Source: Diadema antillarum
Lineage: Eukaryota
Direction: 5' to 3'
Assembly (NCBI RefSeq): GCF_040938485.1
Contig: NW_027272096.1
Location: 248,001 to 312,000, forward strand
DNA length: 64,000 nt
Both the position numbers and the translations under genes were made by a program. Shown one piece after another: positions 11,501 through 44,900 of this stretch (its first letter is position 1; each line of letters opens with the position of its first letter). The notes below the pieces were generated by a model. The model made no database searches, was not told the DNA's origin, and worked only from the letters and a program-made list of their open reading frames with translations.

Positions 11501-14500
11501 AAGACTTCACTTTAAACACTAGTTTCGAAATCACCTATACTTTAACGTCATATTTTTACCAATAATTAGACGATACACATCACCAGGGGCCCGTTGCAAA
11601 AAAAAAAAAAGTTACAATTATGGTAACTTTGCCATCCAATAGTAACTTCCATGGAATTCTTGATTTTGATTGGTTGGTGAGTACTGTTGCCATGGTAGTT
11701 ACCATTGGATGGCAAAGTTACCATAATTGTAACTTTTATGCAACGGGCCCCAGGACTTGTCAGAATATGTAGTCCTATGCATTACGAAAGCATGTACAGA
11801 TACTGTTCAACCTTTTTGCTTTCAGCGGATCACACATTTGGTTGACATGAAATCTGCATTAGCCATTAACGATCAAGCATTCGTTCATAGTCTTCACGGT
11901 ACATTCTCCTCTTGCATCACAAACTTTCTTTTATTTGGTCACCAACTTCAACTGGACCTTTCGCATTTTTGTCCCCCCCCCCCCCCCCCCAGCGTGTGAT
12001 ATTACAGAGGAAGCCACCAGCTGCGAGACAACATCAGGATGCAGAACTCACGTCTGTCATTACATCAAGCAACAGAGCTTGTGTATTCTTAAAAGCCTCT
12101 CCGAGGATTCTCCGTGCTGCGAGTGCAAAAAGGGTGAAACCCTGCATAACGGCACCCGCTGCGTACCCATAATGGAATGTCCTTGCCTCGATGCCAGTGG
12201 CGAAAGACGTGAGGTAAGCACAGAATTATGAATGTTTGTAAACCGCGGAATACCTTTCCACGCGCACAGATACCAGCGAGCTTCGGATCTGCGACGCGCA
12301 AGATAAGCTAGAGACGACACTAGTAGGCTATAAAAGGTGTTCTGCACACGCGCAAGACAGCCGTTTTCATTGTTCAACCGTCGTCGAAGCGTTCGCGTCG
12401 GAGATTTTTAGCGTGCTTCTGTCGTAGTTGACCAGAGAGTGGATTATGACAAATAATCATTTAATTGTTTCTGTGTTTTATATTTCTACATGACGTCTGT
12501 ACCAAACATATCTTTGACACTTGTAACTGAACATCTTGTTCCTATGAGATTTCAGCAAATGTGTTAAAATTAGCACAATATCATGTACAAATTTCTGGAG
12601 ACATACTTCTATCAATCCTCAGAAAAATTTGAATGGTATCATAAAAAAGGAAAATATCATTACTATTTTTACTTTTATTTTGCTATTACAGCAATGATGA
12701 TAATTGTGAATAGCGCTGAATTCATTGATACGTAGAACGGCAAAGTGATTTTTCCCAATGTCTTAACGCTTGTGTGGAACGTTCTTCGGAATTGTAGCTT
12801 CTTTATGAATTGGTATTATTTCATTCACAGGCCCACGAGCGCTGGTCAAATCCACTCAAAGAGTGCGAAACATGTCGGTGCTCATCGAACAGCATCGTCT
12901 GTTATCCCACAGCAAACTGTACGACGTCAACAACCACTCCAGGTATTGTTTTCTTCCCTCTCTCCCCCCCCCCTTTTTTTCTCTTTTTCTTACCTATACT
13001 TATCACTTTGACATCGTAAAACTAGATTATGCTGATGATAATCTTCATGATCTTGATTTTCCAATGAAAATTTGCCTCGGCGTAACTGGTAGCATTTTTT
13101 TTTGTCTTTAATTGCCTTTATATACACTGTACAATACTGTTTCAAAGGTACTGTTTACCATCGGGAGCAGTGGTTTTAAAAAAGATGCTCGAGATATCAC
13201 AGTTGATGCATATGTGTAGGTCAGTTGTATCACGAAACATCCAACCATATTGAAATTTTGCAATAAAGCCTAGAATATAAGGAGATATCATTTTTTCTAT
13301 CAATAAACCATAACTGTAGACGGTTTAGTCTACAGGTGTTTTTATTATAACTATCGTTCACATTTATCATATATAACAATACTTAACATTGATTATACTT
13401 ATTCAAATATTTACATTAGTTGTATCTATCCCTACCTCAAATTTTAGAACTATTTTGAAGCAATAAGACTGGGTTTTTGTTTCATCTGCATAATGATGGT
13501 TATGTTATTGCTGTTTTCTTTCTCACAGTCATTACCACGGCCGCACCGACTACAACACCACTTCTGCCTCCAGGTATGCTTCATTTCTATCACAAAGTGA
13601 TATCTGGAGAAGGTTAAAAAATCCATCGATTTTGTGATGGGGTACCCTGTCCCATAAAAGAAATACGTAAAAGAAATAAAGAAAGAAAGGTTCGCGCTCA
13701 TTAAGACCAAAATTGTGCCAAAAAAATGTGAATATCACATCGGTATTTGTCTTTATCTGCCCCCACCCTCCTTTCCGAGACAACAAAGAGTACTTTGAGT
13801 ACCGATACCATATCCGTATACTATGTACACTTACTTGTGTTATGTGAGTACAAACTCACTGGTATCGAAATTATCGGGGATTGCAATGTCGACCGATATT
13901 GACAAGTGCTAGAATATGAACTCACGCGTATTATTTGATATCATTCGGGAAAAAACCCCACACACAATGCAGAAGACTGCTATTCGGTTCTTGGCCTGGA
14001 AAATCACGTGCATGGTATCACCCTGAGTGCATCGACTAGTCAGACTCTGCGACCGGCGTCCATGGCTCGCCTCAACAACGCCTTCGCTGCCTGGGTGCCC
14101 ACTTCAGACGACACCAATGTCTGGTTGCAAGTCGATTTCTCCGTGCCCACTCGAGTGACCGGGATAGACACCCAGGGTTTCCACACCGAGTGGGTGAGCC
14201 GGTTCCATATCGAATACTTCAGGGACGAGGATGGGGACGTCGGCACTGCCGTCCTGAACGCACACGGGAGGCCGATGGTACGTTGGTATTTTCTTCTTCG
14301 TTTGTTTTTTTCTGAGAATATTGCCAAGAAAAACCGTTCATAATCATGCGCAGCAACAGACTTAAGCCAGCTTTCCTCCATCCAATTACATGAAGCAATA
14401 AATGCAACAACAACAACAAAAAAAGATTGTGTTGAAGATTAAAAAACAAAATAATGTCCTCAATATAATAATTCCCCCTTTCGTTTGTTCTATGTGTGCG

Positions 14501-17500
14501 AAATGTAAAAATACAATAAGCATACCAATGGGAATTTTTACTTTGCAGAGTGATATTGCCTTTGTTCAGAAGGGGATATTCTTTGATTAAAGAAGAAGCT
14601 ATTAAACATAATTTAAACATAATTAAACAAAAGTGTTAATATTCAAAATAGTTATTTATAGTTGTATATAAGCAGTAACTGCTTCTTCGTATGGGTGTAA
14701 GTACAAATCAGAAAAGAGACAGCTTTTAAATTTCTCTTTCATTTCAATTCCAATTACATTCTATTTCCAAAATCACATTTTTGTTGTTGATGCAAATTCA
14801 AGGAAAACAAAAACAATGTATTACAACAATATGTAAACATTCCGGTATATAATATATACAAATGATGAATTCCATTCGGTCTCATGTTTTTTTTTTTTTT
14901 CTGTAGAAATATTTTTGAGGTGTTCATGTTAATTTCAGAGGAATAACGATTTCAATAAATATGGACACTGGTGATACATAATGATAACGTCTTGAATTTC
15001 TGTCTTCAGCTCTTCAAGGCAAACAGTGATGGGGACAGTATTGTCAGCAACGTCATTCCAGACATGCCTTACGTCGACGCCATAAGAATCTTGCCCGTCG
15101 TCGACGCGCAGACGAACTGGATAGCCCTGAGGATAGAACTGCGTGGATGTCAAGGTGACTATTTATGTTAGGATTCTCTCCGTGTTTCAGACATGCTGCT
15201 CAGTAGGAGCTGCTCCAGTTCTTCGGCCCCGTTGCAAGAAAGTTGCAATCAATTGCAAATAATTGCTAATTTTGAAACAACCATTCTGATTGGCTCAGGG
15301 TCTGCCCTATTAAGAAGACATGCATGCAACAATGATTTTGATTGGCCAGGGACAATCATTTGCAAGTTGCGATTAAACGCAAAGTTTCTAGCAACGGGGC
15401 CCTGGTCTTTATAACGGTATCTTATAATAAATGCGATTTGAATCAGTGAGTTGGGTGGTATAGGTCCAAACCGAAGAAAAAAATGATCCTGACTGTTTTT
15501 CTTGTAATTTGGCTAGGATTCTATTCGGGGTTTTTTTTTCCAATGGCTCTTTTGCAAGTATACACTAAATAGACTAGAGGTCGCAACCTAAGGTTAGGAT
15601 TTTCTAACCCATTCATTTTGTAAGTGGTGGAGTGAAAACGGGGTTCTTTGTACTCACTTTGCTTTCCACGGAATGTACGACCTCCTCAATGCAGTCCTGC
15701 CAAGAATGTCAAGAATCAGGATTAAGATAATCACCTTCAAATGCAGGCCCAAGTGAAATTTTTTATAGGAGTAGATGCAAACATTTGGATAATGAGGGCA
15801 TATTTTCTTTTGCTGGAAATCACATCTCACTTCTCAATCACATCTCAATCATTTGTAAACTAAACTATGAAAAAGAGGGGAAACATTTCATATATTGTCT
15901 CGTTTACATCTGTGCAGAGGTTTCACATTACTAGCATTTATAAATATGTAACGTTTAACTTTGATAATGCAACTTTTGCTAGGCTGTAGCTCGGCACATA
16001 TTTTCATACTTACTGTCATGACTGTAGCCCCTCTGTCAGACTGTAATATTTCTCTTTGAGGAACATATCATTTCAATATTGCCATGGGAACTATCATCTG
16101 TTTGTTGTTTCTTGTGTTTGTGATGTAATGTATTTTGTTAGGCAGCTCACCCCAAGCTCTGTTTTTTTTAGGTCTACCTTCCTTGTACAGTCTTATGTAT
16201 GTGATATACAACATAAAAAGATGAGAAATAAAATATTTTACAAATTTGAACTAGAACTTGAACTTGAATTAAAAATGTTGGCCAATACCTGGCTTATTTC
16301 AATTTTCTTGGTCCTTGTTCACTAAAATTTCGACTTGGGTTAGTCCTCACTTTGTACGTATTTCCACACTAATTGGTAAATTATCTTCGCAATGTGAATA
16401 ATTCAGATAAAAAGGGAGAATTCTTTTGTAATAAAGGAAAATGGTAAAACATTTCATGATGCCCGATACTACAGCAATTACGTATCCTACTACAATGTAG
16501 TAGGCCTACGTCGAGGTATAGACGTGTTCAACGCATAGAAATGTGTGCCAGCTAGTACGCCTGTGTCTGTGCACGTTTCGTTTTGGATACATAGGTCTCC
16601 AAAAAGTTATCACTTAAAAAGAGTAGTAAGAGAAAAATACTCAAAACCATAAAAAATTATTTAAAAAATATGTATTTCCATAATGCACTCAAATGCTAAA
16701 GACAATCACACTGGCTACTGTCATGGCATACAATGATTAGCTAGCCAATCCTTCTGTTTCCTATGCAGAAAAGTATAACTCCTCCAAACAGATCATGCAA
16801 TCAATATTTTATATGTATTCTTGTTTTTGTCTTCCTTTCATTTCATCTGCAGAAATCATCTCAGTGCCTACTACCACTGGTAAGACTTTATTTGCATTTT
16901 TTATGGCAGAACACACCCACAGATTAAGACACGCAAAAGTGTTTCCACACAAATTAGCGCGTGCAACGCTAGCACAAGAACACAAACTCACACACAAACT
17001 CACACACAATGATCGCAAGAAAGCTGTATGACGATGTCTTCTGTTTTTCCGTTCTTCTAAGTGTGTCCCATTTCGATATAAATCACTGCAGTAACATTCA
17101 ACGTCAAAATACAAGAAACAGGGGAATAGTTAATTACTTCATCTTTATCTTGTAGTTGACAACACTTTTCCTTTCCTCTCGAACCATGCCAGTTACGTGA
17201 GAGATAGGAAAATAAAACTATAAGGAGGTGAAGAAATGAAGATATGTACAAGGATTGTGATGGTCATATTCGAATGACCCCCTTTTGAGACCGATGTTTC
17301 CCCTAGTCATGAGCTGCAAAACAACAACAGCATACAAACAAACAACAAACAAACCAAACTCATATGTCTCGAATAGCTATACAACGCCAAAAGGGCATTA
17401 ACTAGTGAATCAATCTTGTCCTCCCATTTTGAAAAAGGACCTCCCTCCACTCCACAAGTTACCACCCGTCCTGCCACCACGCCTCCAACAACAGAAGCAA

Positions 17501-20500
17501 CAACTTTCCAAGGTAAAGACCCTACTCGTTGGCCGGCCCTTTAGTGTTAGAGCCAATCGAAAAGATATTCTAACGTTGTACCGCCGAATAGTCACGAACT
17601 ATCCTCCGAAGATTTTCCAGTGTTAGCAGATGTGCACATTCCTTAATATTTGATATCGAATATGAGATGATATCGAATATGAGATGATAAGGAGTCAAAG
17701 ACAAGGATTTCGAATAATTCGTGCAGTGGATAAGATTTGCTAGCAGTAGAAGTTCTTTGTGGTGTATAATTTCCTTTTTATCTCGGCACCGCGAAAGAGA
17801 AAATCTTGTAGTCCAGTGTGATAAGATGAGGATGTTTCCAGTCTCCCCGGATTTATTCTCGTTGGATAAAGCCATAGTGAAGCGCCATCAATATAAGAAT
17901 GGGATATGAGATTCTCATAGTATTTCCTTTCTAAAACTATACCAGTAAAGGTGAATAGAGATTATGCAGTTTTGTGCACGTTCATGCCGATTTGCGTTAT
18001 CGCCTTTCCAGAAACTACCGAACCTGCTAGGACAACCACAACTATTTCATCTACCACAACACGAGGTAAGAGAGCTTAGATATCATTGCGTTATAAAGTT
18101 TAAATTGTTTCTGATTCAATCCTTGCTAAACAAATTGCTCGAAAAACACACGATTCGATAACGCACACAGACACACACACAAACGAAAATAATATGGACT
18201 AATCAAAAAGGAAATGTCTTGCGAGATAATAGATTACTGATATGAAACAGTAAAGAGCGTACAATTCTACGAGACATTTAAAGTTTATCGCAATATGAGG
18301 AAAATTGGTTTTGAATGTCTTAGATATCCACAGAGGTCCTAATGAAAGGTGGATCCCACAGTTTACTGGGACTTTGTTTTACTTCGTACTTGAATATTTT
18401 CTCCAAAAATTGATACATTTTGAATTCCTCTTAGAAAAGCATATTTTTCATATGTCTTGAGAGGTTGGTCATTATCTCGCAAAACAAGTTGCAATCTGAA
18501 TCTTCTATCTCAGAAATATACCTTCCCTTTAAAAGGCTATGTATCTGCCAAATCTCGCTCCATGACAGGTGTATGCGAGGAGCCAATGTTCGAGCTTGGT
18601 GTACTTGTGTCGACTAATGGCGATCAAGAGAGCAATATCTTCCAAGTATCCGGCGTACCAGCAGCATACGATCCCGCGAATCCACCCGCTGTCAGCTCCC
18701 TGAACACCGCCTACTTTCAGTTCACCAAACCCGTCACAGTGCGGCGAGTGCTTATTGGTCAGGCGGACGGGGGCGACGCGCCGGAGTCTCTCCTGATCCG
18801 ATTGCTCAATCCCGCCACGAACTCTTTCTTCGTCGATGCCAATAACTCGCCCATCGCGGCAGAGCCCATAGCAGTGGTTGGAGGATCAATCGAACTTCCC
18901 GAAACTCTGTTTCCTGTCAGTTCGCTGACGTTGGCAGTCGTCCAGGCAAGCCGGACACCACTCAGCTTGACAGCCGACTTCCTTGGATGCGAAAAGGAAG
19001 GTTAGCTCTCTATCATGTTTATTAATGTGTGGCGCTCGGGATCTTGTTTTAAATCTCTCCATACGAGTACACTTGTCACGCTTCTGGTTCTGGTTTTAAA
19101 CACCAAGTGACTTTATTGAAACGCAATTTCACTCTTCACTTATACAAGTGATGAAGTCGCAGAGCAGAATGAAGAGGACAACCTGCCTCCTCTATTGTTT
19201 CTATTTTAATAGTTGGGTTCTTGTTTTGGGGATCGGAATCACTGACTTCTTATAGATCTTAAAAGAGAGGGGGTGGCGTTGTTTATTGTCAAAATTGATG
19301 CTGATAGATAACCTTGACCATCTCCTTTAACTCTTTTTTTTTGCCACGTTCGCAAGCCCGAATCAGTCGACGGCGTGCCAAGTATATTCTACTCAAACGC
19401 ACAATCCTGCCCAAGCCGATTGATAAATCGACAAAATCCACAGTACAATGAAAGAGTTTCTCGCGATTGTATTCCTGTTACATACACCTTGAATTTTTTA
19501 ATGTGGTGACTGACCATCAAGCGGTGTTGTTCCCAACTTAATTCAGAGGTAAATTCTTAGTTTCAGTCAAGTTACATACTAGATTTCAAAGACATGTTTC
19601 CCCAAAACATGACTCTGACAATGCTGTCTCAGAAAGATAATGACGCACAGGGAGTTTTCACGATAGTTGTATATAAAAGAGTTAAACTTGATGATGTACG
19701 AGAAGTTATTGCGTTGATTTCTGTATTTCAGAGAGAGAGAGAGAGGTAGCAATTACAATTGAAAACACTCACTTTGGTGATTTCCTCTTTATTGTGTATA
19801 GTAACGACCGTCGAAACGACTACTGTGACAAGGACATCTGCGACGACGTCCGAGACAGAACCAACGACGAGGACAGAGATCGTGGTCACAACGACCAAGA
19901 CAACTACCGGTCCCGGCACTGTTACAAAAGTGACGACGTCATCGACCACAAGCATTGAAGGTGAGTTTGCAAGAAGTTGCTCCTAGCGTACCGCGTGAAA
20001 CGTACCAATTCTAGATTGACATTGTAGTGCTTTGTGTACATGTTCAAGTCGCTGTGATTGATAATACCTTGTATCTGCCATTGAGCAATATCACTGCTTA
20101 ATAACAATGAATTTCTCCGAGTGCATGTCGGACAAAATCGTGATGCAGTGTGTAAGTTAGACTGATGATTAATGTGATATCAGTTGTGGTCCTTGAGCAG
20201 AGAAAACAATACTCCGGAAACCCAAAACAAATTGCAATGAACAAGGTAGCAGTTTTACATAGGAATGCACGAATAGAGGCTCATATATTTCAGAAATGTA
20301 GCACTGCAATTCCATTACAATACCGCTTGCTTTAACGAGGTCACCTGTGCACAATTTATGCATGCTTTCTTATTTTATTTTGTTCTGCTACCATGAGCCC
20401 CCTTTCAAGCATTCTTATTGTGAAGCTGCTATGTCATCATAATGATTTGTTATAACTTCGAAAGCTTTCCTATTTCGTACCAAATCACTATAAAATCTGA

Positions 20501-22850
20501 AACTCTGTACCAAGTATAACCAATTTATAGTTGTTCCAATGTTCAAGTCTGAGTTTCCCTTCAAGAATGGCTATGTGTGACTTATTTGCAGGGGAATGCA
20601 GAGACGACATGGATGATTTGAATGTCGTGAGCTCGATCAATAACGTACCACGAGAGGAGGTGGATACCCTGACATTTAGTGGTATTCCTGAATCCTACGA
20701 CAACACTCAGCCACTTGTGCCGTCCATCGCCAACTCCTTCACCGTCATATTCAACAGGCCGGTAATCGTCAACGTGCTGCCAGTCGCAGCTGACTCGGGA
20801 AGCGTGCCACAGTTCGACGTCATCGTGCGGGAGGAAGACGGAACGCCATTCACTGACGTCAACGGAACGCCTCTGGCTTCGCAACAGATTCCGTTGGTGA
20901 ACGGCGAGCTCAACCTGCCTGACACGCTGCCACCTGTGACGGGGCTCCTCGTCATCGTCGTTGCGTCAGACCAGCCAACGTTTAACGTCAATGCCGGTTT
21001 CCTTGGCTGTGTACCAGGTAATATTATCGCCGTTCACACCCATTTTACGATAGCCCATCTCTGTAACATATGCATCCGACTGAGCCGTACGATACTGGAA
21101 ATTGATTCGTTAGTGATTACTTTAACTTGACGCATGTTCATTTATTGTTTGTACTATTTCCTGCACCCATTCGTGAATACCATGAGAAAATCTAAGTTGA
21201 TTTTGTGGGAGGGGGGGGGGCGTGATTTAAAGAACAGCAGAGAGAGTGTTTTTGTTTTTGTTTTTGTTTTTATCAGTTATCATTTTCTACAAGGATTAAG
21301 GTGCTTATTTGCACTGGCTTTAGATTTACGATATATAATACGAATATACTGGCAATGTATCAAAGCAGATCGTACTAAAATATTATGTTCACTTCTGCTC
21401 ATCAGTATAGTCCATGGGTCTGTTGCTTTAATTCGTCCACATAACAGAGCACACGACTCTTCCAACCGAACCTCGGCAGACAACCACCAGCCTTCCACCA
21501 ACCACCCACATTCCTTCTTCGACGCCAACGTTACCAATCGTCACCACGAAAATACCAGAAATTTCAACCGTGCGCACAACAGAATTGCCAACGTCAAGAG
21601 TTGCCACTACTCTCCCCACAACAGTGCCTGTACAAGAGACAACTGCTTTTGCCAGAACGACAACAGCGGCTCAACCTACAACAGTCTCGGCAACCACAAC
21701 CGTACCACTTTCCACAACTTTGCCGAAATCAACAGTCATCACGACTCTGCACCAGACCTCCAAACTTCCAGAGGTCACGACCTCCAAACTTCCTGAGATC
21801 ACGACCTCCATACATCCAGAGGTCACGACCACGAAACTTCCTGAGGTGACGACATCGGTCCCCGAAACAAAAACACAGATACCCCATTCAACCGTCACTC
21901 TCCCGCTCAGTACGGCAACGATTCCCCGGGTATCTACATCACACATTCTCGAGAAAACGACTCTCCCAGTATCCACAACCGAACTCCTTAAAACTACATC
22001 TCTGCCGGAATCCACCACCGCTCTACCCAAAACCACGAGTCTCCTAAAGTCTACAACCGCTATCCTCGAGACAACAAGTCCTGTGGAAACGACCAGCCTT
22101 TTCTCAACAAAAACTGTTCTTCCAACCGCACCAACCACCACTCCGACATTTAAGCCGGTGACAAGTGAACGAACGCCGGCTGTTACTTCTCAACTCGCCA
22201 CAACTCTGTTGTCTTCAATTTTGACGAGAACGACATCCGCCCCTTCAGTAACTACAAGGCCAGCGGAACCTACTACAACGACAATTGCAGAAATTACAAC
22301 AAAAGGTGAGGGAAAGAAATTGTGACGAAGATCATAACAATAATAATAATGATAATAATAATTGCATTTATATGGCGCTTCATACTGACGTTTCTAAGCG
22401 CACGATCATATGAACCGTGGCCAATTGTCACGCGAACATATTTTTTTTCCATAAGTTTTGTCATTTTGATTAAAGAATTATTGATTTCCCTCGAATGGAA
22501 TAACGTATGAGTTACTGTGGTTCCATCAATATTCACGTTTAAAGGATTTGTAATTTGAAGTCCAATCCTACCATTGCCTGTTCCAAAAAATGGTAGGGGA
22601 AGATAAAGTATAGGGAAAACGGTGACAGTTATCTAGAGATACAAAACAAGAAATGGAAAAGGTGTTTGCTGATGTGCCAATTGTGATGCCGAAAATATGA
22701 CTATGACCGAATTGGTCAATGATATAATTTTTTAGAGTCAAAATTCTTCAGGGTTTTTTTTTCTTCAAGAAACCAGGATGGAAGTAATTCTTTACAGACA
22801 TGTGATAAATTCGACGAGTAAGACATGCTTGCACATATATATTCAGTTTG

Positions 22851-22883
<33 letters not shown>

Positions 22884-22900
22884 ACGCTTACAAACACACA

Positions 22901-22934
<34 letters not shown>

Positions 22935-23843
22935 TATTCCATCCTGGTTTAACGAAATTATTTTGCCGCTAGAAAATTATAATATTTATGTCAGTTATCA
23001 ATTATTGAATCTCTGTATCTCTGTATCACTCTTATTTGTTCCATCTTCTTGTCGTTACTGTTATTTTGGACTTACATTGTCCTAATGTTATTTTTTATTA
23101 GGATTGTTATTATTATGATTATGATGATGATTATTATTATAATCATTATCATTATTATAATCATTACCATTGTTGTCACTATTATCATTATCATTATTAT
23201 AATCATTACCATTGTTGTCACTATTATCATTATCATTACTAATCTATTTCAGGTCAATGTGAGGATCCAATGACCAGTCTCGGAGTCGAAGTAAATATAG
23301 GTACAAGAAGGTCGAGCTTCGATGTCAGCGAGGTACCTGAGACATATGACTCGACAGCGTCGTTTTCTTTCGCGAGTCCAAACGTCGCGGTCGTCGAGTT
23401 TTCTGAATCTGTCATCGTACGACGAGTGGTCATAACATCCGCATCGGAGCCACCACAGTCGTTGTCGGCCGTCCGTTTCCTTGTGAGGGATACGACTTTC
23501 AATCCATTCGTTGATGCCGACAATAACCAAGTTGCTGTAGAGCCGATATCCCTTGAGGGTGATCGACTGGAACTTCCATCCAGTTTACCAGCGCTAAGAG
23601 ACCTCGTGTTGATTGTTGCTCAGGCTGACGAGTCCGCATTGTCCTTGAATGCGGAATTCTTCGGATGTATAGAAGAAGGTAAAATTGTCTTATTATACAG
23701 AGAAATCAATTCTTTCGGTTCATACTTTCTCTAAAAGAAACTGACAATGTTCTCTGTTGAAACAATGCAAGGGAAAATGAGTATTATGCTACTCTTACAT
23801 GCAGAAATGCTTCAAAAGACATCGCACAATTCATACGATGCAG

Positions 23844-23874
<31 letters not shown>

Positions 23875-26823
23875 CGTCAGGAAGAAAGTGCGATTTTTCC
23901 AAAATCATCCCACATGATGATCTGCTTGCAAAACTAGTCTTTCAAGCATTAATTAGATATCACAGAAAAGGTCAAATTATACAACTGCGGTGTAAGTCAT
24001 GTTGTTAAAATTTTTACACGCTTAAGGTACTACAAATGATGAAAAGTAAAACGGAGTCTCAGTTTTGCAATTTGAAGGCTTTGAACCTCATCCTACGAGA
24101 ATCATCCTATTCGAAAATCGGAATGACCAAAGTGTAAGAGCGTACTCCCATAATGAAAGTTGATCTGATTTGCAAACTGATATCATAGCGTGGAACCACT
24201 CACAGTCTATTGCAACTGACTAATTGCCAATCCAACTAAATTAACAACTTTCGCTTGATCAACATACGTGGAAACAGGGACCAACTCTCTGCCGTTGGAA
24301 AGTTTCGGATATAGTCAGAAATAATTGTGTCCGCCGTAAGCTTTTATTTTGGTTTTATTCTTCACATTTTCCGAACATCAGTAACTGTCGTCGAAACCAC
24401 GACTGCAGTGAGGACTCCTGTTCCTACCACAACGCAAGCACCTGAGACAACTAAGACAGAGTTGTTGACCACTACGAAGACCATCACCACATCGGGCACT
24501 ACCCGCACCGTGGAGACAACAACAGTACCTACTGTTCCAGGTTGATACAGCCTTACCATTTTTCAATATCCACATTTTTTTTTCCTGAATGTTTTTAGCA
24601 GACATCCCAGCCATTCTAAATTTGGAGAAAAGAGTCAAAATTTTGACCATTTCCAGGTCTTGTTTCATAGCATTTTCCTTTTTCTTCTTGGTCATTTCAC
24701 TACACACTCTTATGGTAACTGGGTTCTCTCTTTCCTACCATAAAAGCAACCCTGTTTTTCAGTCAGAAACGTTGGGAGGTCTGTGTTAGGCTATTATAGG
24801 CTACGTTAGGCTATGTCGACAGTATAAGTACTATACCCGTGATGTCAAAGTCGCAGACGAATGAACTTGTGGCTTCATTCGCTTTCGGAATAATTAATTT
24901 CATTCCTGCCTTTCATAACGTCTCTCTAGTGTTTCCATTTTCTCTGCTTCGCATAGATGCGTACGAAGTCAGTGCATCTAGTCAATATGGCACTGAACGA
25001 CGCTTCGGACAGAATATTAATCTTTTCTCCTTTCATTCTAATATTCATTTGTGATGTTAGCTACTACTACTGCAGCGCCATCGAGTGAAATTTACACCGA
25101 GAGGACCACCATAGTGACAACGCCAATCACGGGTAAATTTCATCTTAGTTTCGTGACGACCAACTGCGTGTTGGCGTCATGATTCCGTTTTATGAAATGA
25201 ATCCTATTATGAAAAGCTGACTTCTTCATAGTTAACTACTTACTTGGTTGCTCAATCATTTATCAATTAACTTGCCGAAGCATTTAAGAAGGAAACTCTC
25301 TCCACTTTGACGTGCTTTGCTTGAGTGAAACAGAACGCATTATTTCATAACATGTTACAATAACATGTATCACGCTTTTTAACATTAGTTGAATTTATGA
25401 GTATATTTGTTTGTGTATACATGACACATACACTTCTCGAATGCTTCATAATGTCTGGACTTCATAGCTTTCTTCATTAACGATGAACCAATCTAAACCA
25501 GTTTTTTTGTCCATTTCTTCCTAGAATGTGAAATCGATGGCACTGTTCTTCAGGTACGTAAGATCCCGTCGATCCAAATATATCGCATGCCCACAATGCG
25601 AGTAAGAAACACGTGTTACGCGTAATTATATCACATGAGGCTACACTTAAAATATTAAAATAAATCATAAGAATCTGTATGTATCAATAAAGACATGCAC
25701 AGGGACGGAGCGGGAGGAAATACTCCGAGGTAGGGTCATAAATATATCACTTTCTGGAAATGGAGACATCAGCTCATAAAATCACGGATATGCATTATTT
25801 TCCCCGTGATCTTCATACAGCAAAACGTGACAAAAATCAAGTATGCCTAATCATTGTATTGCCGCCATACTGTGAATGCACCGTCCCCTCTTTCGTATCT
25901 CGTTCGATCGTGTCTGAAACGTTTCTCATCGGCTACTCATGCAGACGAACGAGTCGCTGCAGGATCCTAATGACAACTGCACAGTTTTCCGATGCTTGGA
26001 CAATGGGTTATTCAGCAGGACAGACTATGTATGTGAGATGCCGTGTAAGGTAAGTTTGTTTGTTTGTTTGTTCATTTAAAAAAAGTAAATCATATAAAAA
26101 TTAAACAATGTTGAACATGACATAATTGAAACAACAATCAAGGTTGAAGTATCAGAACACAATGCAAACATTGGACATTTGACGATGATGATGGTAGCAT
26201 GTGTCAACGTACGGTTGATAGCTGCATCTTTAATGTACTGACCAGTCTGAAAATGCCTTGACAGCATACAATCAAATCATGAGGTCATGGCACTGTAGCC
26301 TAACTGGAGGTCTTGCTGTCTTTAGGTGTGTTTAAAGCTTACATGTTTGTGAGTCACTGAACAAGGATGCGTGTGATAGTTTAGCTTTAGCTTTAACTTT
26401 AGCTTTTCTCTCTCTCTCTCATCAGACGACCTACCCTCCGGGATGCTGTGACGGATGTTGTAAGCGCACCACAATCCATATTTCTTTATATCTCATTATT
26501 ACGTGATTATTAATCTTACACGTAAACTTAAATAGGCCATAATTTGTAAACTGGTTGACCCATGCACGTCTGGCGTTCAATGTAACACATTCTCGCACAC
26601 AGTCATTTCTATGCCCATGACTTCGGAAATTCCTATCATACGCGAATGATATGTGTATATAAGCTTGTGTTAGGGTAATCCAAAAGCCTCCACCCAGAAT
26701 CGTATTTTCGCTCATACTCTTTATACTGATGGTAACAACGTATTACCAGGGAACAGAAACTGGATATGATGATAATAACAGTAATGATCATATAATCATA
26801 TTTATATTTGACACCTTCAAGCT

Positions 26824-33400: not shown

Positions 33401-36400
33401 TTTAATAAAACTTTTAATATTTGTCATAGTGGCGCTCTGCTTGTACACAAACGATTATTTGGTACCGCATTATGCCCAGTTTCCTTTTACAGAGAGAAAA
33501 GGCCAGACTGCTTCCAGACCTTGGCCAAATGCGCGGCCATATGTTGAACCGCATTTGGCCATTTTTAAGGGTTTCCAGCGAAAGGAAGGCCAGGCTGAGC
33601 CCGATCTTTTCACTCACTGTAAACGGGGCCTAGGTTAATATGCTGGAGAGGCGTGTTACTTACTGCACATTATCTCATTGATAATTAAACAGAATTCACC
33701 ACGACCAAGACACGAACAGAAGCAACAACCAGACCGGGAACCGAAAGAGCAACAACTGTCATTGAACAAACTACTGCAACTCCTGAATCAACAACTACAA
33801 CTCAGACAACTGTTACATCAACCACTAGTGCAAGGCAGGAATCTACAACGCCAGGTACTTTTTTACTTGCGTTTTTCTAGGACTCCTGTCCCCAGATTCG
33901 AAACCGGAAGGATTTCATTTATTACTAGAGGACAGTTGGACAATTTTTCGCGTTAACGTAACCTGATCTTCCTCTACATTCTGCCTAAATGTATTCAGGA
34001 AGCAAGTCAGTTTCCTACACTGAACAAATGACTGAATACAAATGGTACTATCTCTGAATAAGTTGCACGTGTCATGTTTGCTGAACAAATGTACGCTTCA
34101 TACTCGTCGTCATCGAGGTTATACCTATCTACATTCAACTTTCCAACTTTACCAGGTGCTTGTAGGGAACCACTGGATGGTGTGGATCTTTATACTAATT
34201 TGCAAGTTTTACTGGATAACGAACGTGTTACTGTTCACGCTAATAGCGAATCACCTAAAAAGACAGATTTTGACAATCACAATAGGTGATACGCTGATAC
34301 CGTATCACCTATAGCGTACACATTCTGCAACGTGCGTTTCTCACCTTGGATTTCCGATTCATTTTTGTTTCATTAATCAGCAACGGGCATGGAAACAACA
34401 GTAGTTACAACCGTTGTAACTACAACAGTACCTACCACCACGTCGAAACCCACAACAGTCACTGAAGCTACCACCACAGCTGTTACCACAACAACTCCGA
34501 TGGGTACTACTAGGATGGAGGAGACCACAACTCTTTCTACTACTACTACTCCTGCTCAGACTACAGCAATGGGTAAAGCCTTGTTCTTTTTTTTTTCTCT
34601 CTCTCTCTGGCAAATGAAATTTCTTTATAAATTAATATCGTAAGTTAACACTTCCCTTCTATCCCAATTTAAGGCATGGAATTTAGTTGAGAATAATGTT
34701 CTAAATTGACTACTGGTGGCACTTTAAGACTTAGGAGATTGTCATCGCTACAATACAATACATTGTTATGTATCCCCAAAACAACATTTGCACCAACAAC
34801 TAAAGTAGTAGTAGTGGAGACAACTGCTACTCAGTCGACCATCACATATACCACTTGAGCAACTGAGCAACCAACAACAGCACCAGGTAATTTCCATTCC
34901 ATTCTAATATGATTCATGTCCCATTAAACATCAACGGTAGTGGAACGCTATGGTATGGCCAAAATATTTTACCCAATAACTGAGACGAACGATTGACCAT
35001 TCTTTTCAGAATGCTACGAGCCACAAGAGCCATTGCAAGAAGTCACTACCTTGACATACGAAGCCAGTTTCAGTCAGCCTACTACTATCAGAGGAATAAA
35101 ACTACCTGCCAGCAGCTTCCCTACAATGACTACAGTAGTATTCAGGATCAAGCGCGCCGAAGGAGATGAATGGATTATTGTTCCTGCACAGAGCACAGAA
35201 TCAGGATCTGGTGACTTCTCCGGTTCAGGATCGGGAGAGTCAGAGAATCAGGTAAATCCTAAATAGACAAGTATTCCCTTGTTCTACACAAAACATACAT
35301 TACCACTTCTTGTATTAATACGTTATAAATGAAATGGGCGGTATTTCGCCTGTATCTTCTATTAACCCTTTATGTGTTTTGAGTGTTGATTTGCACGTAC
35401 AACCCTAAAGCATTGTTTACGATATCCAACAACAGTGGATGATGATAGAGAAAGGCTTCACAATATCATCTATCTTCAATCTTCAGTGTACCAGTCCTAC
35501 ATGTAAAATTTCTACAGTTCATCTACTCTGATTCCTCATACTAATACTTTTTATCTTTCTTAGAAAAGCATAATTATGTGACCCCTTTATTGTAGTCGTA
35601 TTTCAAACATATTTGATTTTCCAGATTGACATTTGCATTTTCTGAACGTTGTTTGGTCCAGATATCAAATAGAAAAGTTGTACTAATGCACTGATTAATT
35701 TCGTTGTATTCTTCATAGGGAGAAGTGACGTTTTCTTTGAGTGACTCTGCTCCAACTAACCTCTGGCTTCCATCCGAATTGGGGCCTGTGCGAGCTATCG
35801 AAGCAAGCTTTGGAGATGCACTTAATCTGGGAAATGAAATCGATGTCTACGGCTGTCAGGGTAGGTGCACTTAAACCGACTTATTCACAAACAGCACTCT
35901 TGTGTGGAAAAGTTCTTTTCAGTTCAAACCGAAAAATCTCGTTCACGAATAGAATTCAATCAGTTCTATCTAACGTGTCTGTCGCGATCCCCTTAGATGT
36001 TCTTATTACGCAGAAAAGGTATATACTAAGATTTATTTCTAATCATTTGATTCTTTCTCCATTTATAGATTATAAGACATATTGTATTCCCTCCGTGCTC
36101 TATGAACTGTATAATCAGTGAACTTACAGCATTATAAGTTGTTAGCTATTCCAATATCAATTCCCTTAAAACTGAGAGCATTTTCAGTTGTTAGCTATGG
36201 CCAGATCAATTTCATTAAAAAGGTTCCTATGGATTTATTTTCCCCTTTGTTTGTATATTACCGCAGGACCCACTCTGGCTCCAACCACGAGAGGTACCTC
36301 TCCCCCAGGTAATACATTCCATTTTTATAAAAATATTAGGTTTCCTCGGTTTGGTCAAATACCTTGAAACATTAAATAAGTAAAAAAAACAATATCTCTT

Positions 36401-38460
36401 TTAAAGCTCAAGACCACAGCGAAGCGCCAAACGCTGCAATCTCATTTTTTCCTCCCTCAACATCTAAAGCGATGACACTGTTTTTTTTTTTCAAAATACA
36501 CTTGAAATCATCATTTTAGTCAAGAAAAGGAGGAAAATTGTCTTTTAAGATATATTTCATACTTCAACTCTGTCTAATACGACTGTATTCGATCCAAAAG
36601 TAGAATGTTCTCATTTGTTTCTTTCTCTCAACATTTACAGAAACGACAACTCTGGGTCAGTCAGGTAGGTCTACGTCTCCATTGTATTTCTAACCTTTTT
36701 GAATTAACATGTAGTAAAAAAAGAAAATCAGATATCACTAAATGATAATTGCTTTAAGATCAAACTGGTTTCGACTATTCTTCCCTATAAGTCTTCTCTT
36801 TAAAAACAAAAGTCTCTCAACTGTCAAAAACACTGAGTGAAAGATACATGTGTGTCGTTTTCTCCTTTTTTACAGAAGTTACAACAACAAGGACGCGAAC
36901 GCGAGCGACAACGACTACTGCTCCAGGAACCGAGCAAACAACAGCAGTAGTAGAGGAAACTACTGCCACTCCTGAAGCAACAACTACAACTCAGACAACT
37001 GTTACATCGACCACAACAGCACGACAGGAATCTACAACGCCAGGTAACTTCTCACTTCCATTTTTCCAAGACTCGTGTCCGAAGACGTAAAACCTGAATT
37101 ATGTCATGTAAAACTAGAAGGCGGTCACTCAACTCTTTCGTGTTAGCGTAACCTCTTCCTTCATCTTCATTCTGCTTGATGGTATCCAGCAACCAAGTTT
37201 GCTTAACTAAACGAATGACTAAAATGCATATGTTAATATCTCTTTCAATGACTTTAACGTGTTACTGTTCACTTAACAATATTGTACCCTACAAATTCGT
37301 CGTCACGCCCGTCTACATCCAAGACATTTCTTTTATTTACCAGCTGCTTGCAGAAAACCACTGGATGGCGTGGATCTTGATACTAAATTGGAAGTTTTAC
37401 TTGACAACAATAAAACCAACCTTTGGAGCGAACCTACTTCAGAGAGGACAGTGAAGGTCACTGTCAAATCAGTCGATGACACCTCAGACCTGACGATTAA
37501 GATATCAGCTGTCAGCATAAGCACAACCAATGGTTCACCTCCCGATAGCGTTACAATTGGTGTCCTCTCGTCCAGCGATGGACCTGTTGAACGCGAATTT
37601 ACAGCTCAACCCGGAGACGATCAGACTCAAGGAATGTACGAGCTTCGAAACTTGACTGGTTTGAATGAAGTTTATTTCGAAATCACTCTTCCTGACGACT
37701 ACAACGTGGCAGATTCGGAATTGACGGTGACATTCAGAGGATGTATTGAAACAGGTAATTTCATTTCTTTATGCGCTGAAGAAGTCCTCATTCATCTCTT
37801 TTGTTCTTGTATATGATCTATACATTTCTCCCACTAAATTTAACCACTACCTGCTGATATTGCAACAGCATATCAACTTTGGAATTTTGTGTGATCACAA
37901 AAAGATGATTGGCAGGTTATTGATTTGGTAAATTTATGTCTATACATTTTTCACCCATTACTCCTGCACTTTAATTCTTTTTTCTAATTAATCAGTCCTC
38001 ATCCATCTCTTTTGATCGTGTAATGATCCATTCATATATAACCGGTAACTGCTGATATTCCAACAACACATCAACTTCAGAATTTTAAGTAATCACAAAG
38101 AAAAAAAAAAGATAATTGGCATGTTATTGCTTTGGTAGGTTTATGTCCATATATTTCTTGCTGATTATTCTGGTACTTTATAACAGTGCACTCAACTTAT
38201 CAGCAACAATTTCACACTACACTACACTACGATTCATTATTGTTTCATTAATCAGCAACGGGCATGGAAACAACAGTAGTTACAACCGTTGTAACTACAA
38301 CTGTACCTACCACCACGTCGAAACCCACAACAGTCACTGAAGCTACCACCACAGCTGTTACCACAACAACTCCGATGGGTACTACTAGGATGGAGGAGAC
38401 CACAACTCTTTCTACTACTACTACTCCTGCTCAGACTACAGAAATGGGTAAAGCCTTGTT

Positions 38461-38491
<31 letters not shown>

Positions 38492-41400
38492 GGCAAATGA
38501 ACTTTCTTTATAAATTAATATCGTAAGTTAACACTTCCCTTCTATCCCAATTTAAGGCATGGAATTTAGTTGAGAATAATGTTCTAAATTGACTACTGGT
38601 GGCATTTTAAGACTTAGGAGATTGTCATCGCTACAATACAATACATTGTTATGTATTCCAAAACAACATTTGCACCAACAACTAAAGTGGTAGTAGTGGA
38701 GACAACTGCTACTCAGTCGACCATCACATATACCACTTGAGCAACTGAGCAACCAACAACAGCACCAGGTAATTTCCATTCCATTCTAATACGATTCATG
38801 TCCCATTAGTATAAACATCAACGGTAGTGGAACGCTATGATATGGCCAAAATATTTTACCCAATAACTGAGACGAACGATTGACCATTCTTTTCAGAATG
38901 CTACGAGCCACAAGAGCCATTGCAAGAAGTCACTGCCTTGACATACGAAGCCAGCTTCAGTCAGCCTACTACTATCAGAGGAATCAAACTACCTGCCAGC
39001 AGCTTCCCTACAATGACTACAGTAGTATTCAGGATCAAACGCGCCGAAGGAGATGAATGGATTATTGTTCCTGCACAGAGCACAGAATCAGGATCTGGTG
39101 ACTTCTCCGGTTCAGGATCGGGAGAGTCAGAGAGTCAGGTAAATCCTAAATAGACAAGTATTCCCTTGTTCTACACAGAACATACATTACCACTTCTTGT
39201 ATTAATACGTTATAAAAGGAAAATGGGCGGTATTTCGCCTGTATCTTCTATTAACCCTTTATGTGCTTTGAGTGTTGATTTGCACGTACAACCCTAAAGC
39301 ACTGTATCGATATCCAACGACCATGAATGATAGAGAAATGCTTAACAATATCCTTTATCTTCAGTGTACCAGTCCTAGCTGTCAAATCTCTACTTATCAT
39401 CTTCTCTGATTCATCGTACTAAAACTTGTTATCTTTCTTGGAAAAACATTATTATGTCACCCCTTTATTGCAGTCGTATTTCAAACATATTTGATTTTCC
39501 GGATTTGCATTTGCATTTTCTGAACATTGTTTGGTCCAGACATCAAATTGGAAAGTTGTACTAATGCATTGATTAATTTCTTTGTATTCTTCATAGGGCG
39601 AAGTGACGTTTTCTTTGAGTGACTCTGCTCCAACGAACCTCTGGCTTCCATCCGAATTGGGGCCTGTGCGAGCTATCGAAGCAACCTTTGGAGAAGCACT
39701 TAATCTAGGAAATGAAATCGAGGTCTACGGCTGTCAGGGTAGGTGCACTTTAAGCGACTTATTCAAAAACAACACTCTTATGTGGACAAGTTCTTGTGAG
39801 TTCAAACGGAAAATTCTCATTCACGATTAAAATTCAAACAGTTCTATCTAACGTGTCTCTCGTAATCCTTAAAAGTTCTAGTTACGCAGAAAAGGAATAT
39901 ACTATGATTTATTTCTAATCATTTGATTCTTTATCCATGTATAGATTATAAGACACATCGCATTCACTCCGTGCGCTATGAGCGGTATAATAAGTGAACT
40001 TACAGCATTTTAAGTTGTTAGTTATGGCCAGATCAATTTCATTAAAAAGGTTCCTATGGATTTATTTTCCCCTTTGTTTGTATATTACCGCAGGACCCAC
40101 TCCGGCTCCAACCACGAGAGGTACCTCTCCCCCAGGTAATACATTGTATTTTTATAGAAATATTAGGTTTCCTCGGTTTGGTCAAATACCATGAAACATT
40201 GAATAAGTAAAAAAAATAATAATATTTCTTTTAAAGCTCAATACCACAGCGAAGCGCCAAACGCTGCAATCTCATTTTTTTTCCTCAACATCTAAAGCGA
40301 TGACACTGTTTTGGTTTTTTTTCAAAATACACTTGAAATCATCATCTAAGTCAAGGAAAGAAGGAAAATTGTCTTTGAAGATATAATTATTTCATATTTC
40401 ACCTCTGTCTAATACGACTGTATTCGATCCAGAAGGAGAATGTTCTCATTTGTTTCTTTCTCTCAACATTTACAGAAACGACAACTCTGGGTCAGTCAGG
40501 TAGGCCTACGTCTCCATTGTATTTCTAACCTTTTTGAATTAACATGTACCAAAAAAAGAAAATCAGATATCACTAAATGATAATTGCTTTAAGATCAAAC
40601 TGGTTTCGACTATTCTTCGCCATAAGTCTTCTCTTTAAAAACAAATGTCTCTCAACTGTCAAAAACACTGAGTGAAAGATACATGTGTGTCGTTTTCTCC
40701 TTTTTCACAGAAGTGACAACAAGGACGCGAACGCGAGCGACAACGACTACTGCTCCAGGAACCGAGCAAACAACAGCAGTAGTAGAGGAAACTACTGCCA
40801 CTCCTGAAGCAACAACTACAACTCAGACAACTGTTACATCGACCACAACAGCACGACAGGAATCTACAACGCCAGGTAACTTCTCACTTCCATTTTTCCA
40901 AGACTCGTGTCCGAAGACGTAAAACCTGAATTATAAGGTCACTGTCAAATCAGTCGATGACACCTCAGACCTGACGATTAAGATATCAGCTGTCAGCATA
41001 AGCACAACCAATGGTTCACCCTCCCGATAGCGTTACAATTGGTGTCCTCTCGTCCAGCGATGGACCTGTTGAACGCGAATTTACAGCTCAACCCGGAGAC
41101 GATCAGACTCAAGGAATGTACGAGCTTCGAAACTTGACTGGTTTGAATGAAGTTTATTTCGAAATCACTCTTCCTGACGACTACAACGTGGCAGATTCGG
41201 AATTGACGGTGACATTCAGAGGATGTATTGAAACAGGTAATTTCATTTCTTTATGCGCTGAAGAAGTCCTCATTCATCTCTTTTGTTCTTGTATATGATC
41301 TATACATTTCTCCCACTAAATTTAACCACTACCTGCTGATATTGCAACAGCATATCAACTTTGGAATTTTTGTGTGATCACAAAAAGATGATTGGCAGGT

Positions 41401-41982: not shown

Positions 41983-44900
41983 GGCAAATGAACTTTCTTT
42001 ATAAATTAATATCGTAAGTTAACACTTCCCTTCTATCCCAATTTAAGGCATGGAATTTAGTTGAGAATAATGTTCTAAATTGACTACTGGTGGCATTTTA
42101 AGACTTAGGAGATTGTCATCGCTACAATACAATACATTGTTATGTATTCCAAAACAACATTTGCACCAACAACTAAAAGTGGTAGTAGTGGAGACAACTG
42201 CTACTCAGTCGACCATCACATATACCACTTGAGCAACTGAGCAACCAACAACAGCACCAGGTAATTTCCATTCCATTCTAATACGATTCATGTCCCATTA
42301 GTATAAACATCAACGGTAGTGGAACGCTATGGTATGGCCAAAATATTTTACCCAATAACTGAGACGAACGATTGACCATTTCTTTTCAGAATGCTACGAG
42401 CCACAAGAGCCATTGCAAGAAGTCACTGCCTTGACATACGAAGCCAGCTTCAGTCAGCCTACTACTATCAGAGGAATCAAACTACCTGCCAGCAGCTTCC
42501 CTACAATGACTACAGTAGTATTCAGGATCAAACGCGCCGAAGGAGATGAATGGATTATTGTTCCTGCACAGAGCACAGAATCAGGATCTGGTGACTTCTC
42601 CGGTTCAGGATCGGGAGAGTCAGAGAGTCAGGTAAATCCTAAATAGACAAGTATTCCCTTGTTCTACACAGAACATACATTACCACTTCTTGTATTAATA
42701 CGTTATAAAAGGAAAATGGGCATTATTTCGCCTGTATCTTCTATTAACCCTTTATGTGCTTTGAGTGTTGATTTGCACGTACAACCCTAAAGCACTGTAT
42801 CGATATCCAACGACCATGAATGATAGAGAAATGCTTAACAATATCCTTTTATCTTCAGTGTACCAGTCCTAGCTGTCAAATCTCTACTTATCATCTTCTC
42901 TGATTCATCGTACTAAAACTTGTTATCTTTCTTGGAAAAACATTATTATGTCACCCCTTTATTGCAGTCGTATTTCAAACATATTTGATTTTCCGGATTT
43001 GCATTTGGCATTTTCTGAACATTGTTTTGGTCCAGACATCAAATTGGAAAGTTGTACTAATTGCATTGATTAATTTCTTTGTATTCTTCATAGGGCGAAG
43101 TGACGTTTTCTTTGAGTGACTCTGCTCCAACGAACCTCTGGCTTCCATCCGAATTGGGGCCTGTGCGAGCTATCGAAGCAACCTTTGGAGATAGCACTTA
43201 ATCTAGGAAATGAAATCGAGGTCTACGGCTGTCAGGGTAGGTGCACTTTAAGCGACTTATTCAAAAACAACACTCTTATGTGGACAAGTTCTTGTGAGTT
43301 CAAACGGAAAATTCTCGTTCACGATTAAAAATTCAAACAGTTCTATCTAACGTGTCTCTCGTAATCCTTAAAAGTTCTAGTTACGCAGAAAAGGAATATA
43401 CTATGATTTATTTCTAATCATTTGATTCTTTATCCATGTATATAGATTATAAGACACATTGCATTCACTCCGTGCGCTATGAGCGGTATAATAAGTGAAC
43501 TTACAGCATTTTAAGTTGTTAGTTATGGCCAGATCAATTTCATTAAAAAGGTTCCTATGGATTTATTTTCCCCTTTGTTTGTATATTACCGCAGGACCCA
43601 CTCCGGCTCCAACCACGAGAGGTACCTCTCCCCCAGGTAATACATTGTATTTTTTATAGAAATTAGGTTTCCTCGGTTTGGTCAAATACCATGAAAACAT
43701 TGAATAAGTAAAAAAAAATAATAATATTTCTTTGAAAGCTCAATACCACAGCGAAGCGCCAAACGCTGCAATCTCATTTTTTTTCCTCAACATCTAAAGC
43801 GATGACACTGTTTTGTTTTTTTTTCAAAATACACTTGAAATCATCATCTAAGTCAAGGAAAGAAGGAAAATTGTCTTTGAAGATATAATTATTTCATATT
43901 TCACCTCTGTCTAATACGACTGTATTCGATCCAGAAGGAGAATGTTCTCATTTGTTTCTTTCTCTCAACATTTACAGAAACGACAACTCTGGGTCAGTCA
44001 GGTAGGTCTACGTCTCCATTGTATTTCTAACCTTTTTGAATTAACATGTACCAAAAAAAGAAAATCAGATATCACTAAATGATAATTGCTTTAAGATCAA
44101 ACTGGTTTCGACTATTCTTCGCCATAAGTCTTCTCTTTAAAAACAAATGTCTCTCATCTGTCAAAAACACTGAGTGAAAGATACATGTGTGTCGTTTTCT
44201 CCTTTTTCACAGAAGTGACAACAAGGACGCGAACGCGAGCGACAACGACTACTGCTCCAGGAACCGAGCAAACAACAGCAGTAGTAGAGGAAACTACTGC
44301 CACTCCTGAAGCAACAACTACAACTCAGACAACTGTTACATCGACCACAACAGCACGACAGGAATCTACAACGCCAGGTAACTTCTCACTTCCATTTTTC
44401 CAAGACTCGTGTCCGAAGACGTAAAACCTGAATTATGTCATGTAAAACTAGAAGGCGGTCACTCAACTCTTTCGTGTTAGCGTAACCTCTTCCTTCATCT
44501 TCATTCTGCTTGATGGTATCCAGCAACCAAGTTTGCTTAACTAAACGAATGACTAAAATGCATATGTTAATATCTCTTTCAATGACTTTAACGTGTTACT
44601 GTTCACTTAACAATATTGTACCCTACAAATTCGTCGTCACGCCCGTCTACATCCAAGACATTTCTTTTATTTACCAGCTGCTTGCAGAAAACCACTGGAT
44701 GGCGTGGATCTTGATACTAAATTGGAAGTTTTACTTGACAACAATAAAACCAACCTTTGGAGCGAACCTACTTCAGAGAGGACAGTGAAGGTCACTGTCA
44801 AATCAGTCGATGACACCTCAGACCTGACGATTAAGATATCAGCTGTCAGCATAAGCACAACCAATGGTTCACCTCCCAATAGCGTTACAATTGGTGTCCT

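Follow-up and report, generated by a model that had tools for sequence, protein, structure and literature searches.

Mucin-like proteins of Bilateria are known to carry FA58C (discoidin) domains, and in vertebrate mucins a different module, the CysD domain, forms globular beads inside the regions rich in Thr, Pro and Ser (PTS regions) (PMC4948705). Moreover, combinations of VWD, TIL and FA58C domains recur in echinoderm adhesives and have been described in sea urchins, sea stars, flatworms and limpets (PMC10057474). Here, a 64,000-nucleotide (nt) stretch of the Diadema antillarum genome assembly (G000:C1208:248001-312000; hereafter, the window) was analysed, in which three single coding exons (D1, D2 and D3) and an array of exons of a fourth type (D4) encode modules of 132 to 139 amino acids (aa) that begin and end with a cysteine. 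D1-D3 form a divergent discoidin-type sequence family with a predicted galactose-binding-domain-like fold, of which D4 is probably a distant member; the family is not modelled by Pfam, and the fold itself is well known. This placing rests on the exon structure, on membership of one sequence family, on the class of the predicted fold and on a mucin context that recurs in other organisms. We consider it fairly probable that D1-D3 are discoidin-type jelly-roll beads lying between the PTS exons of a giant mucin-type or adhesive-type protein, where they may bind a ligand.

The RefSeq protein XP_071476397.1 of Diadema antillarum (P0027, annotated as "uncharacterized protein") maps exactly onto the window. 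Its coding exons run from a two-exon FA58C domain through small Thr-rich exons, D1, a Thr-rich exon, D2, a long PTS exon, D3 and more Thr-rich exons to a VWC-like end, so that each of D1, D2 and D3 is one coding exon with Thr-rich exons on both sides. All features given here by window position lie on the + strand. D1 (18569..19000; 432 nt, phase 1-1, AG/GT borders) encodes residues 174-316 of P0027, and is followed by D2 (20592..21017; 426 nt) and D3 (23253..23678; 426 nt, AG/GT borders). The corresponding whole-codon spans in the P0027 mapping are 18571-18999, 20597-21016 and 23255-23677, and the Cys-to-Cys domains cover 18574-18990 (139 aa), 20597-21010 (138 aa) and 23258-23668 (137 aa), respectively. 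The first intact D4 exon of the window (37344..37754; 411 nt) has its Cys-to-Cys domain at 37349-37744 (132 aa). D1, D2, D3 and D4 all have an AG acceptor 5 nt ahead of the first Cys codon; their GT donor follows the last Cys codon by 10 nt in D1, D3 and D4 and by 7 nt in D2. The modules are therefore encoded by symmetrical phase-1 exons.

These lengths and borders had been given in a first-pass annotation of the sequence, and both the splice sites and the RefSeq mapping agree with it. The motifs that it listed are also present, namely, a C-x-x-[PD]-[ML] start (CEEPM in D1, CRDDM in D2, CEDPM in D3 and CRKPL in D4), an F-x-G-C end (FLGC in D1 and D2, FFGC in D3 and FRGC in D4), and the strings F..[PS]V.V..V, F[VT]D[AV][ND] and L.LP..L common to D1-D3. 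As it had stated, D1-D3 are without Trp and without TQG; D4 has one Trp. The contrast that it drew between one-exon D modules and FA58C holds as well, because the FA58C domains of this genome are divided over exons: at least 139 Pfam FA58C matches were found in the genome, and most of them extend no further than model positions 82-99 of 127.

D1, D2 and D3 share 35-41% pairwise identity over 137-139 residues (D2 35% and D3 41% to D1), and they found one another in a six-frame search of the genome with E-values of 1e-13 to 1e-19; this similarity is not due to chance. With a profile of the family, D2 was the top match in the genome (E 2e-42), and at E <= 1 only D1-D3 and their haplotype copies were retrieved. 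The suspicion that standard hidden Markov models (HMMs) would miss these modules proved correct, since no Pfam model, including that of FA58C (PF00754), matched D1-D4 or any of 25 family members at E <= 10. For the whole of P0027, Pfam recognized only the canonical FA58C domain (E 3.1e-10).

The first-pass annotation had also proposed an HMM search with the modules, and the D1-D3 profile, run on 1.84 billion representative proteins, returned 25 matches. Of these, 23 were true clusters with the whole domain and its motifs, namely, one Diadema protein cluster and 22 short open reading frames (ORFs) of 118-196 aa. The ORFs came from assemblies of ENA, Logan and JGI (with ERZ26222911, ERZ27295545 and ERZ23489132 among the sources), and one belongs to a Tara Oceans marine metagenome (PRJEB4352). 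No annotated proteome other than that of Diadema was represented among the 25 matches. The other two, bacterial repeat proteins (P0012 and P0025), were rejected as spurious, being long proteins that matched only 25-55 profile columns, many times over. The 22 short ORFs span the whole domain, start with Cys-x-x-x-M-D-[DE] wherever the frame is open upstream, share I-P-x-x-Y-D, N-S-x-x-V-x-F and L-P-[DE], and end with F-L-G-C-[VIL]-H-P-G. Both cysteines are kept in every family member whose sequence reaches them. Together, D1-D3 and their relatives made up a 25-sequence family alignment (A3).

The exon design and its surroundings are likewise repeated outside Diadema. Among the metagenomic contigs, the clear cases (L007 and L008) have AG 5 nt ahead of the first Cys codon, and in five of six loci a GT follows the last Cys codon by 10 nt. 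Of the four longer contigs, three carry Thr-rich exons on the same strand within about 1 kb of the module. One contig of 26.7 kb (L007; ENA ERZ26222911) contains two tandem module copies 3.6 kb apart, next to which a non-long-terminal-repeat retrotransposon with endonuclease and reverse transcriptase was observed (L007:9564-11242). The endonuclease shows 68-71% identity to those of intact elements in the Diadema genome, a hint that this contig may come from another echinoderm.

Solved structures were approached by sequence and by shape. Searched against the PDB with the three sequences D1-D3, nothing significant was found. The family profile reached a single solved protein, the PITH domain of TXNL1 (E 5.7e-4, profile positions 36-120), followed weakly by CBM32 "F5/8 type C" proteins (E 0.2-1.3). 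For D1, AlphaFold gave a model with a predicted local distance difference test score (pLDDT) of 79.5 from three sequences and, with A3, an eight-strand sandwich with a pLDDT of 95.9 (predicted template modelling score, 0.88), so that D1 is predicted to have a stable fold, a check that the first-pass annotation had named. Foldseek found nothing in the PDB at E <= 0.001 for either D1 model; the weak matches, every one from the galactose-binding-domain-like superfamily, were neuropilin b1/b2, factor V/VIII C domains, DDR2, CASPR2, CBM32, DOC, PITH and the lectin domain of MGAT4. In an exhaustive structural search of 48,161 chains with VIA, ranks 1-8 and 10-16 were all eukaryotic FA58C domains (neuropilin b1/b2, factor V/VIII C1/C2, DDR1/2, CASPR2 and discoidin I), and rank 9 was a bacterial F5/8 type C domain. 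These top 16 matches had Z scores of 7.2-8.3 and root-mean-square deviations of 3.2-4.5 A, with 110-122 of 139 residues aligned; for the 15 eukaryotic domains, the deviations were 3.4-4.5 A and the aligned residues numbered 112-122. They were followed by CBM32, PITH, muskelin, IFT25 and DOC at Z 6-7, and nearly all of the 50 listed matches belonged to the galactose-binding-domain-like superfamily (Pfam clan GBD). The first (three-sequence) D1 model gave the same structural picture. A shape search of the ESM Atlas returned the same superfamily with TM-scores of 0.52-0.62. The ESM Atlas feature search had low recognition and returned only unnamed viral clusters, which were treated as noise.

By AlphaFold and VIA, then, the D1 model is a distorted jelly-roll beta-barrel of the discoidin type. 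Residues 1..139 of the model span neuropilin-1 431-583 and 275-424, DDR1 31-185 and factor VIII 2174-2326, which we take to be the Cys-to-Cys limits of those discoidin domains. The structural ranking, this cysteine register and the gene context favour the discoidin branch for the predicted fold.

Profile comparison gave a remote link of the same kind. Aligned with hhalign, A3 and the gene's own FA58C domain matched over 84 columns with a probability of 76% and a score of 36.6, compared with 11.5 +/- 2.4 (maximum 20.3) for 50 column shuffles. The description of the modules as discoidin-like in the first-pass annotation is thus backed by a model that best matches eukaryotic FA58C and ends on the Cys pair, and by this profile match. 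Judged by fold and by remote sequence relation, the family belongs to the galactose-binding-domain-like superfamily, as indicated by the VIA list, the PITH match and the hhalign alignment to FA58C. A word-index protein search with the FA58C domain alone gave no match and, with the domain taken as a region of P0001, retrieved only P0001 itself; with the D1-D3 alignment, the same type of search, which limits its candidates by length, returned nothing.

D4 is only 19% identical to D1, so its kinship needs profile evidence, and it was not listed at E <= 1 in the genome search with the family profile. A further array (D5) located 56-75 kb upstream of the window (G000:C1208:173500-192100) emerged as weak matches in the D4 search. 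D5 consists of intact single-exon Cys-to-Cys modules of 137-140 aa (CNE[LP]LPVD...FRGC; L027:1071-1481, L027:7176-7586, L030:2663-3073, L030:5175-5594 and L030:9185-9604) between Thr-rich exons and is 24-26% identical to D4. As single sequences, D4 aligned to A3 over 29 columns (hhalign probability 55%) and D5 over 92 columns (27%). An alignment of D4 and D5 (A4) matched A3 with a probability of 87% over 95 columns up to the terminal GC, with a score of 41.4, compared with 12.2 +/- 2.2 (maximum 18.7) for 60 shuffles and 15.0 for the reversed alignment; the N-terminal third failed to align. Because of this score and because the D4 exon borders have the same spacing to the Cys codons as in D1 and D3, D4 and D5 are regarded as probable distant members of the family, with D5 apparently bridging D4 and D1-D3 in the profile comparison. 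The inclusion of D4 proposed in the first-pass annotation is therefore moderately supported. A two-exon mini-discoidin module from the array of the same gene, compared with A3 exon by exon, gave non-significant hhalign probabilities of 0.4% and 3.6%.

Further intact D4 domains start at 44683, 48511, 52342, 56172 and 60002; one more begins at 63833 and runs past the end of the window. Two broken copies lie inside the array: a D4-like start at 34161..34286 (CREPLDGVDL...) that reaches a stop after 42 codons, and a copy with an internal TAA at 40917..41226 (G000:C1208:288917-289226) that is 83-89% identical to D4 residues 30-132. The D4 array as a whole accounts for at least 100 genome matches to near-identical copies, spaced with a period of 3.83 kb or 2.2 kb, in C1208:285-346 kb. 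A D4 subfamily with 74% identity and a period of 2.34 kb occupies C1208:381-417 kb (381000-417000), where several copies around 393-396 kb (392800-396200) were seen to be broken by TGA stops.

Based on these features, a role for the modules can be proposed. Each would be a folded extracellular unit of about 139 residues from one symmetrical phase-1 exon, with its terminal Cys pair placed where the FA58C disulfide closes the barrel. The units would form globular beads, separated from one another by the heavily O-glycosylated products of Thr-rich (PTS) exons, in a protein that also has TIL, VWC and canonical FA58C domains. Judging from other discoidin and CBM32 domains, they may bind a ligand, most likely a glycan, which could belong to the mucin itself, to neighbouring chains or to microbial surfaces. 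Binding would take place through variable loops at the end of the barrel opposite to the termini and could create non-covalent cross-links or adhesion in a gel. This role would be positionally analogous to that of the CysD domains of vertebrate MUC2/MUC5; because of the CysD-like position together with the discoidin-type fold, ligand-binding beads are proposed. A bolder version is that the modules, with a fold derived from that of discoidin, constitute a new family of lectins, which reversibly cross-links the gel through O-glycans of its own or neighbouring chains or of microbes and which, as an invertebrate functional counterpart of CysD, was spread by phase-1 exon shuffling in marine animals. 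We regard this version as unlikely.

Several results weigh against the placing of D1-D3 as ligand-binding discoidin beads. Z scores of 7-8 are common for the best matches of the VIA tool, and the lead of FA58C over CBM32, PITH and DOC is no more than about 1-2 Z units; therefore, the safe conclusion from structure is membership of the galactose-binding-domain-like superfamily. The FA58C core (the Trp of W-LQVDL, TQG[R] and ARLN/AW) was not found in D1-D3. Compared with a profile built from 22 Diadema genomic FA58C exon pieces, whose alignment shows the classical ARLN...AW...QWLQVDL...V.GI.TQGR signature, only the last 31 columns of A3 aligned ([IL]PD-.P.V..I.I.......L...[FL].GC), with a score of 32.7 against 9.8 +/- 1.9 (maximum 15.5) for shuffles. 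The family thus shares the C-terminal hairpin and the terminal Cys with the FA58C domain of this gene and has lost, or never had, the N-terminal signature. An FA58C-like disulfide between the N- and C-terminal Cys is predicted from the register of the model. The small Z gaps, the silence of the Pfam FA58C model, the shortness of the 31-column alignment and the fact that PITH rather than FA58C was the top PDB sequence match would all suit an origin outside FA58C, from another galactose-binding-domain-like branch or from a convergent jelly-roll that acquired its Cys pair independently. We hold such an origin to be rather improbable: each of the 16 best structural matches is an F5/8 type C domain (15 eukaryotic) in a Cys-to-Cys register, the C-terminal alignment with the FA58C domain of this gene greatly exceeds the shuffled scores, and the modules have an extracellular setting in a gene that also encodes a true FA58C domain, whereas PITH is intracellular.

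Other doubts concern function. Conservation in the 25-member alignment lies mostly in the core strands, chiefly at alternating hydrophobic positions and at the termini; the loops vary in length and sequence, and conserved clusters of aromatic or polar residues, as are typical of sugar sites, were not identified. This pattern would be expected if the modules were inert structural beads, compact protease-resistant knots that space stiff O-glycosylated rods and have no specific ligand. Variable loops are also expected of a diversified binding surface, however, and the polar positions D6, Y32, D33, N44, S45 and D88, which lie outside the core, are kept in 64-76% of family members. Moreover, to our knowledge, nearly all characterised discoidin and CBM32 domains bind something. 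We regard inert beads as unlikely. The combination of TIL, VWC, FA58C and PTS regions in one gene, together with the recurrence of VWD/TIL/FA58C combinations in adhesives (PMC10057474), could instead point to substrate-adhesion domains of a temporary tube-foot or spine glue that bind surfaces or biofilm, as is thought for the discoidin domains of Nectin. No VWD was seen in the examined part of the gene, its huge PTS arrays are more mucin-like, and tissue expression data were looked for and none were found, which leaves a glue distinctly unlikely. Finally, a search for RNA runs that contain this stretch found none, and the two runs found were genomic DNA. The amino acid divergence between D. 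antillarum and D. setosum, at 2.7% in D1-D3 and 4.5% in the PTS exons, is too small to reveal whether the D modules are under stronger constraint than the PTS exons. Since some D4 copies are broken as well, the D exons might be annotation artefacts or decaying pseudo-exons that are not expressed; this seems highly improbable given that the reading frames of D1-D3 are intact, that their splice sites are canonical and their phase is conserved, that they are 96-98% identical between two Diadema species, that the AlphaFold model is of high confidence, and that related intact exons exist in other organisms.

The two genomic runs consist of contigs from a close relative of D. antillarum within Diadema and cover introns and exons alike. 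Their amino acid differences in D1 (F>N, D>N and A>D) equal those of the D. setosum protein. At least 10 nucleotide differences were counted in D1 (432 nt) and at least 10 in only 122 nt of the intron immediately upstream, and this difference in density is consistent with constraint on the exon. The same runs carry a 24-nt insertion at window position 21770, which gives the long PTS exon one extra repeat of the TSKLPEVT type. The D. setosum protein has this repeat as well, a case of between-species copy-number variation of a mucin repeat. Meanwhile, three intronic stretches (20200-20520, 19305-19485 and 22200-22560) showed a summed contig depth of thousands-fold in these related-species DNA runs and are therefore dispersed repeats.

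Around the modules, the canonical FA58C/discoidin domain is encoded by two exons at 14062..15153 (PF00754 and exon mapping on P0027), the first of which ends at 14277 and the second of which covers 15010-15153. The PTS exons include a Thr-rich, mucin-type exon between D1 and D2 (19801..19965; P0027 aa 317-371), the long Thr/Pro/Ser-rich exon between D2 and D3 (21447..22307; aa 512-798) and a Thr-rich exon after D3 (24381..24539; aa 940-992). Additionally, Pfam identified TIL and VWC domains in upstream exons of the same giant gene. The P0027 model starts with a Met at 14062, inside the FA58C domain, whose first Cys is at 13978, and the RefSeq model of the other haplotype reaches upstream into the VWC/TIL exons; several partial gene models seem to divide the giant locus between them. 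Contig C849 (937000-1091000) repeats the whole C1208 locus; its D1 is 100% identical, its D4 arrays differ in copy number, and RefSeq annotates both copies (XP_071507323.1 and XP_071476397.1). The genome of D. setosum measures 886 Mb (PMC11066563), compared with 1.75 Gb for the D. antillarum assembly. The C849 copy is evidently the other haplotype, retained in an unpurged assembly. In D. setosum, the orthologue is XP_072179195.1, with which the 96-98% identity of the D modules was obtained; in the RefSeq models of that species, too, every module is a single exon.

This giant, highly repeated sea-urchin secretory gene consists in large part of a domain that is annotated only as "uncharacterized". 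A profile made from A3 would allow the domain to be recognized in echinoderm genomes and in those pieces of marine metagenomes that are eukaryotic. Glycan binding, if it occurs, would make the modules a new lectin or cross-linking element of invertebrate mucus and bioadhesives and a second example, after CysD, of how mucin gels are held together. Diadema antillarum, a keystone grazer of reefs, has suffered mass mortalities, and the biology of its surface mucus may have applied interest. Because the fold is already well known, the conceptual advance is modest.

Compared with the FA58C/discoidin domains of PF00754 (neuropilin b1/b2, factor V/VIII C1/C2, DDR1/2 and Nectin), the D modules have the same jelly-roll in the D1 model, where the end cysteines map onto the FA58C Cys pair, a similar size (139 versus about 150 aa) and an extracellular location in mucin-type or adhesive-type proteins. 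Their C-terminal strands ([IL]PD..P.V..I.I......L...[FL].GC) align with those of the gene's own FA58C. Unlike FA58C, they have no Pfam match and lack the conserved Trp, W-LQVDL and TQG[R]; they are about 10-20 residues shorter and occupy one exon, whereas the Diadema FA58C domains are split. The mini-discoidin module of the same gene is Cys-bounded too and has similar strings (a CYEPQEPL start, LPSTLGPV and a VYGC end) but differs in being split by an intron and in having a Ser-Gly insert. PITH (the C-terminal domain of TXNL1) and CBM32 match D1 structurally at Z 6-7, and neither of their Pfam models matches D1-D3. PITH is a cytosolic or intracellular, proteasome-associated domain with no terminal disulfide, and CBM32 modules, unlike the D modules, are mostly appendages of bacterial enzymes. 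CysD has about ten cysteines; the D modules have two, D1-D3 contain no Trp, and none of D1-D4 has a Pfam match, so that they do not belong to CysD. The CysD domains (Mucin2_WxxW) of MUC2, MUC5AC and MUC5B nevertheless hold the same position as the D modules, as small globular Cys-containing domains in the PTS regions of giant mucins, and are marked by the WxxW motif (PMC4948705); in fold and sequence, the two are unrelated.

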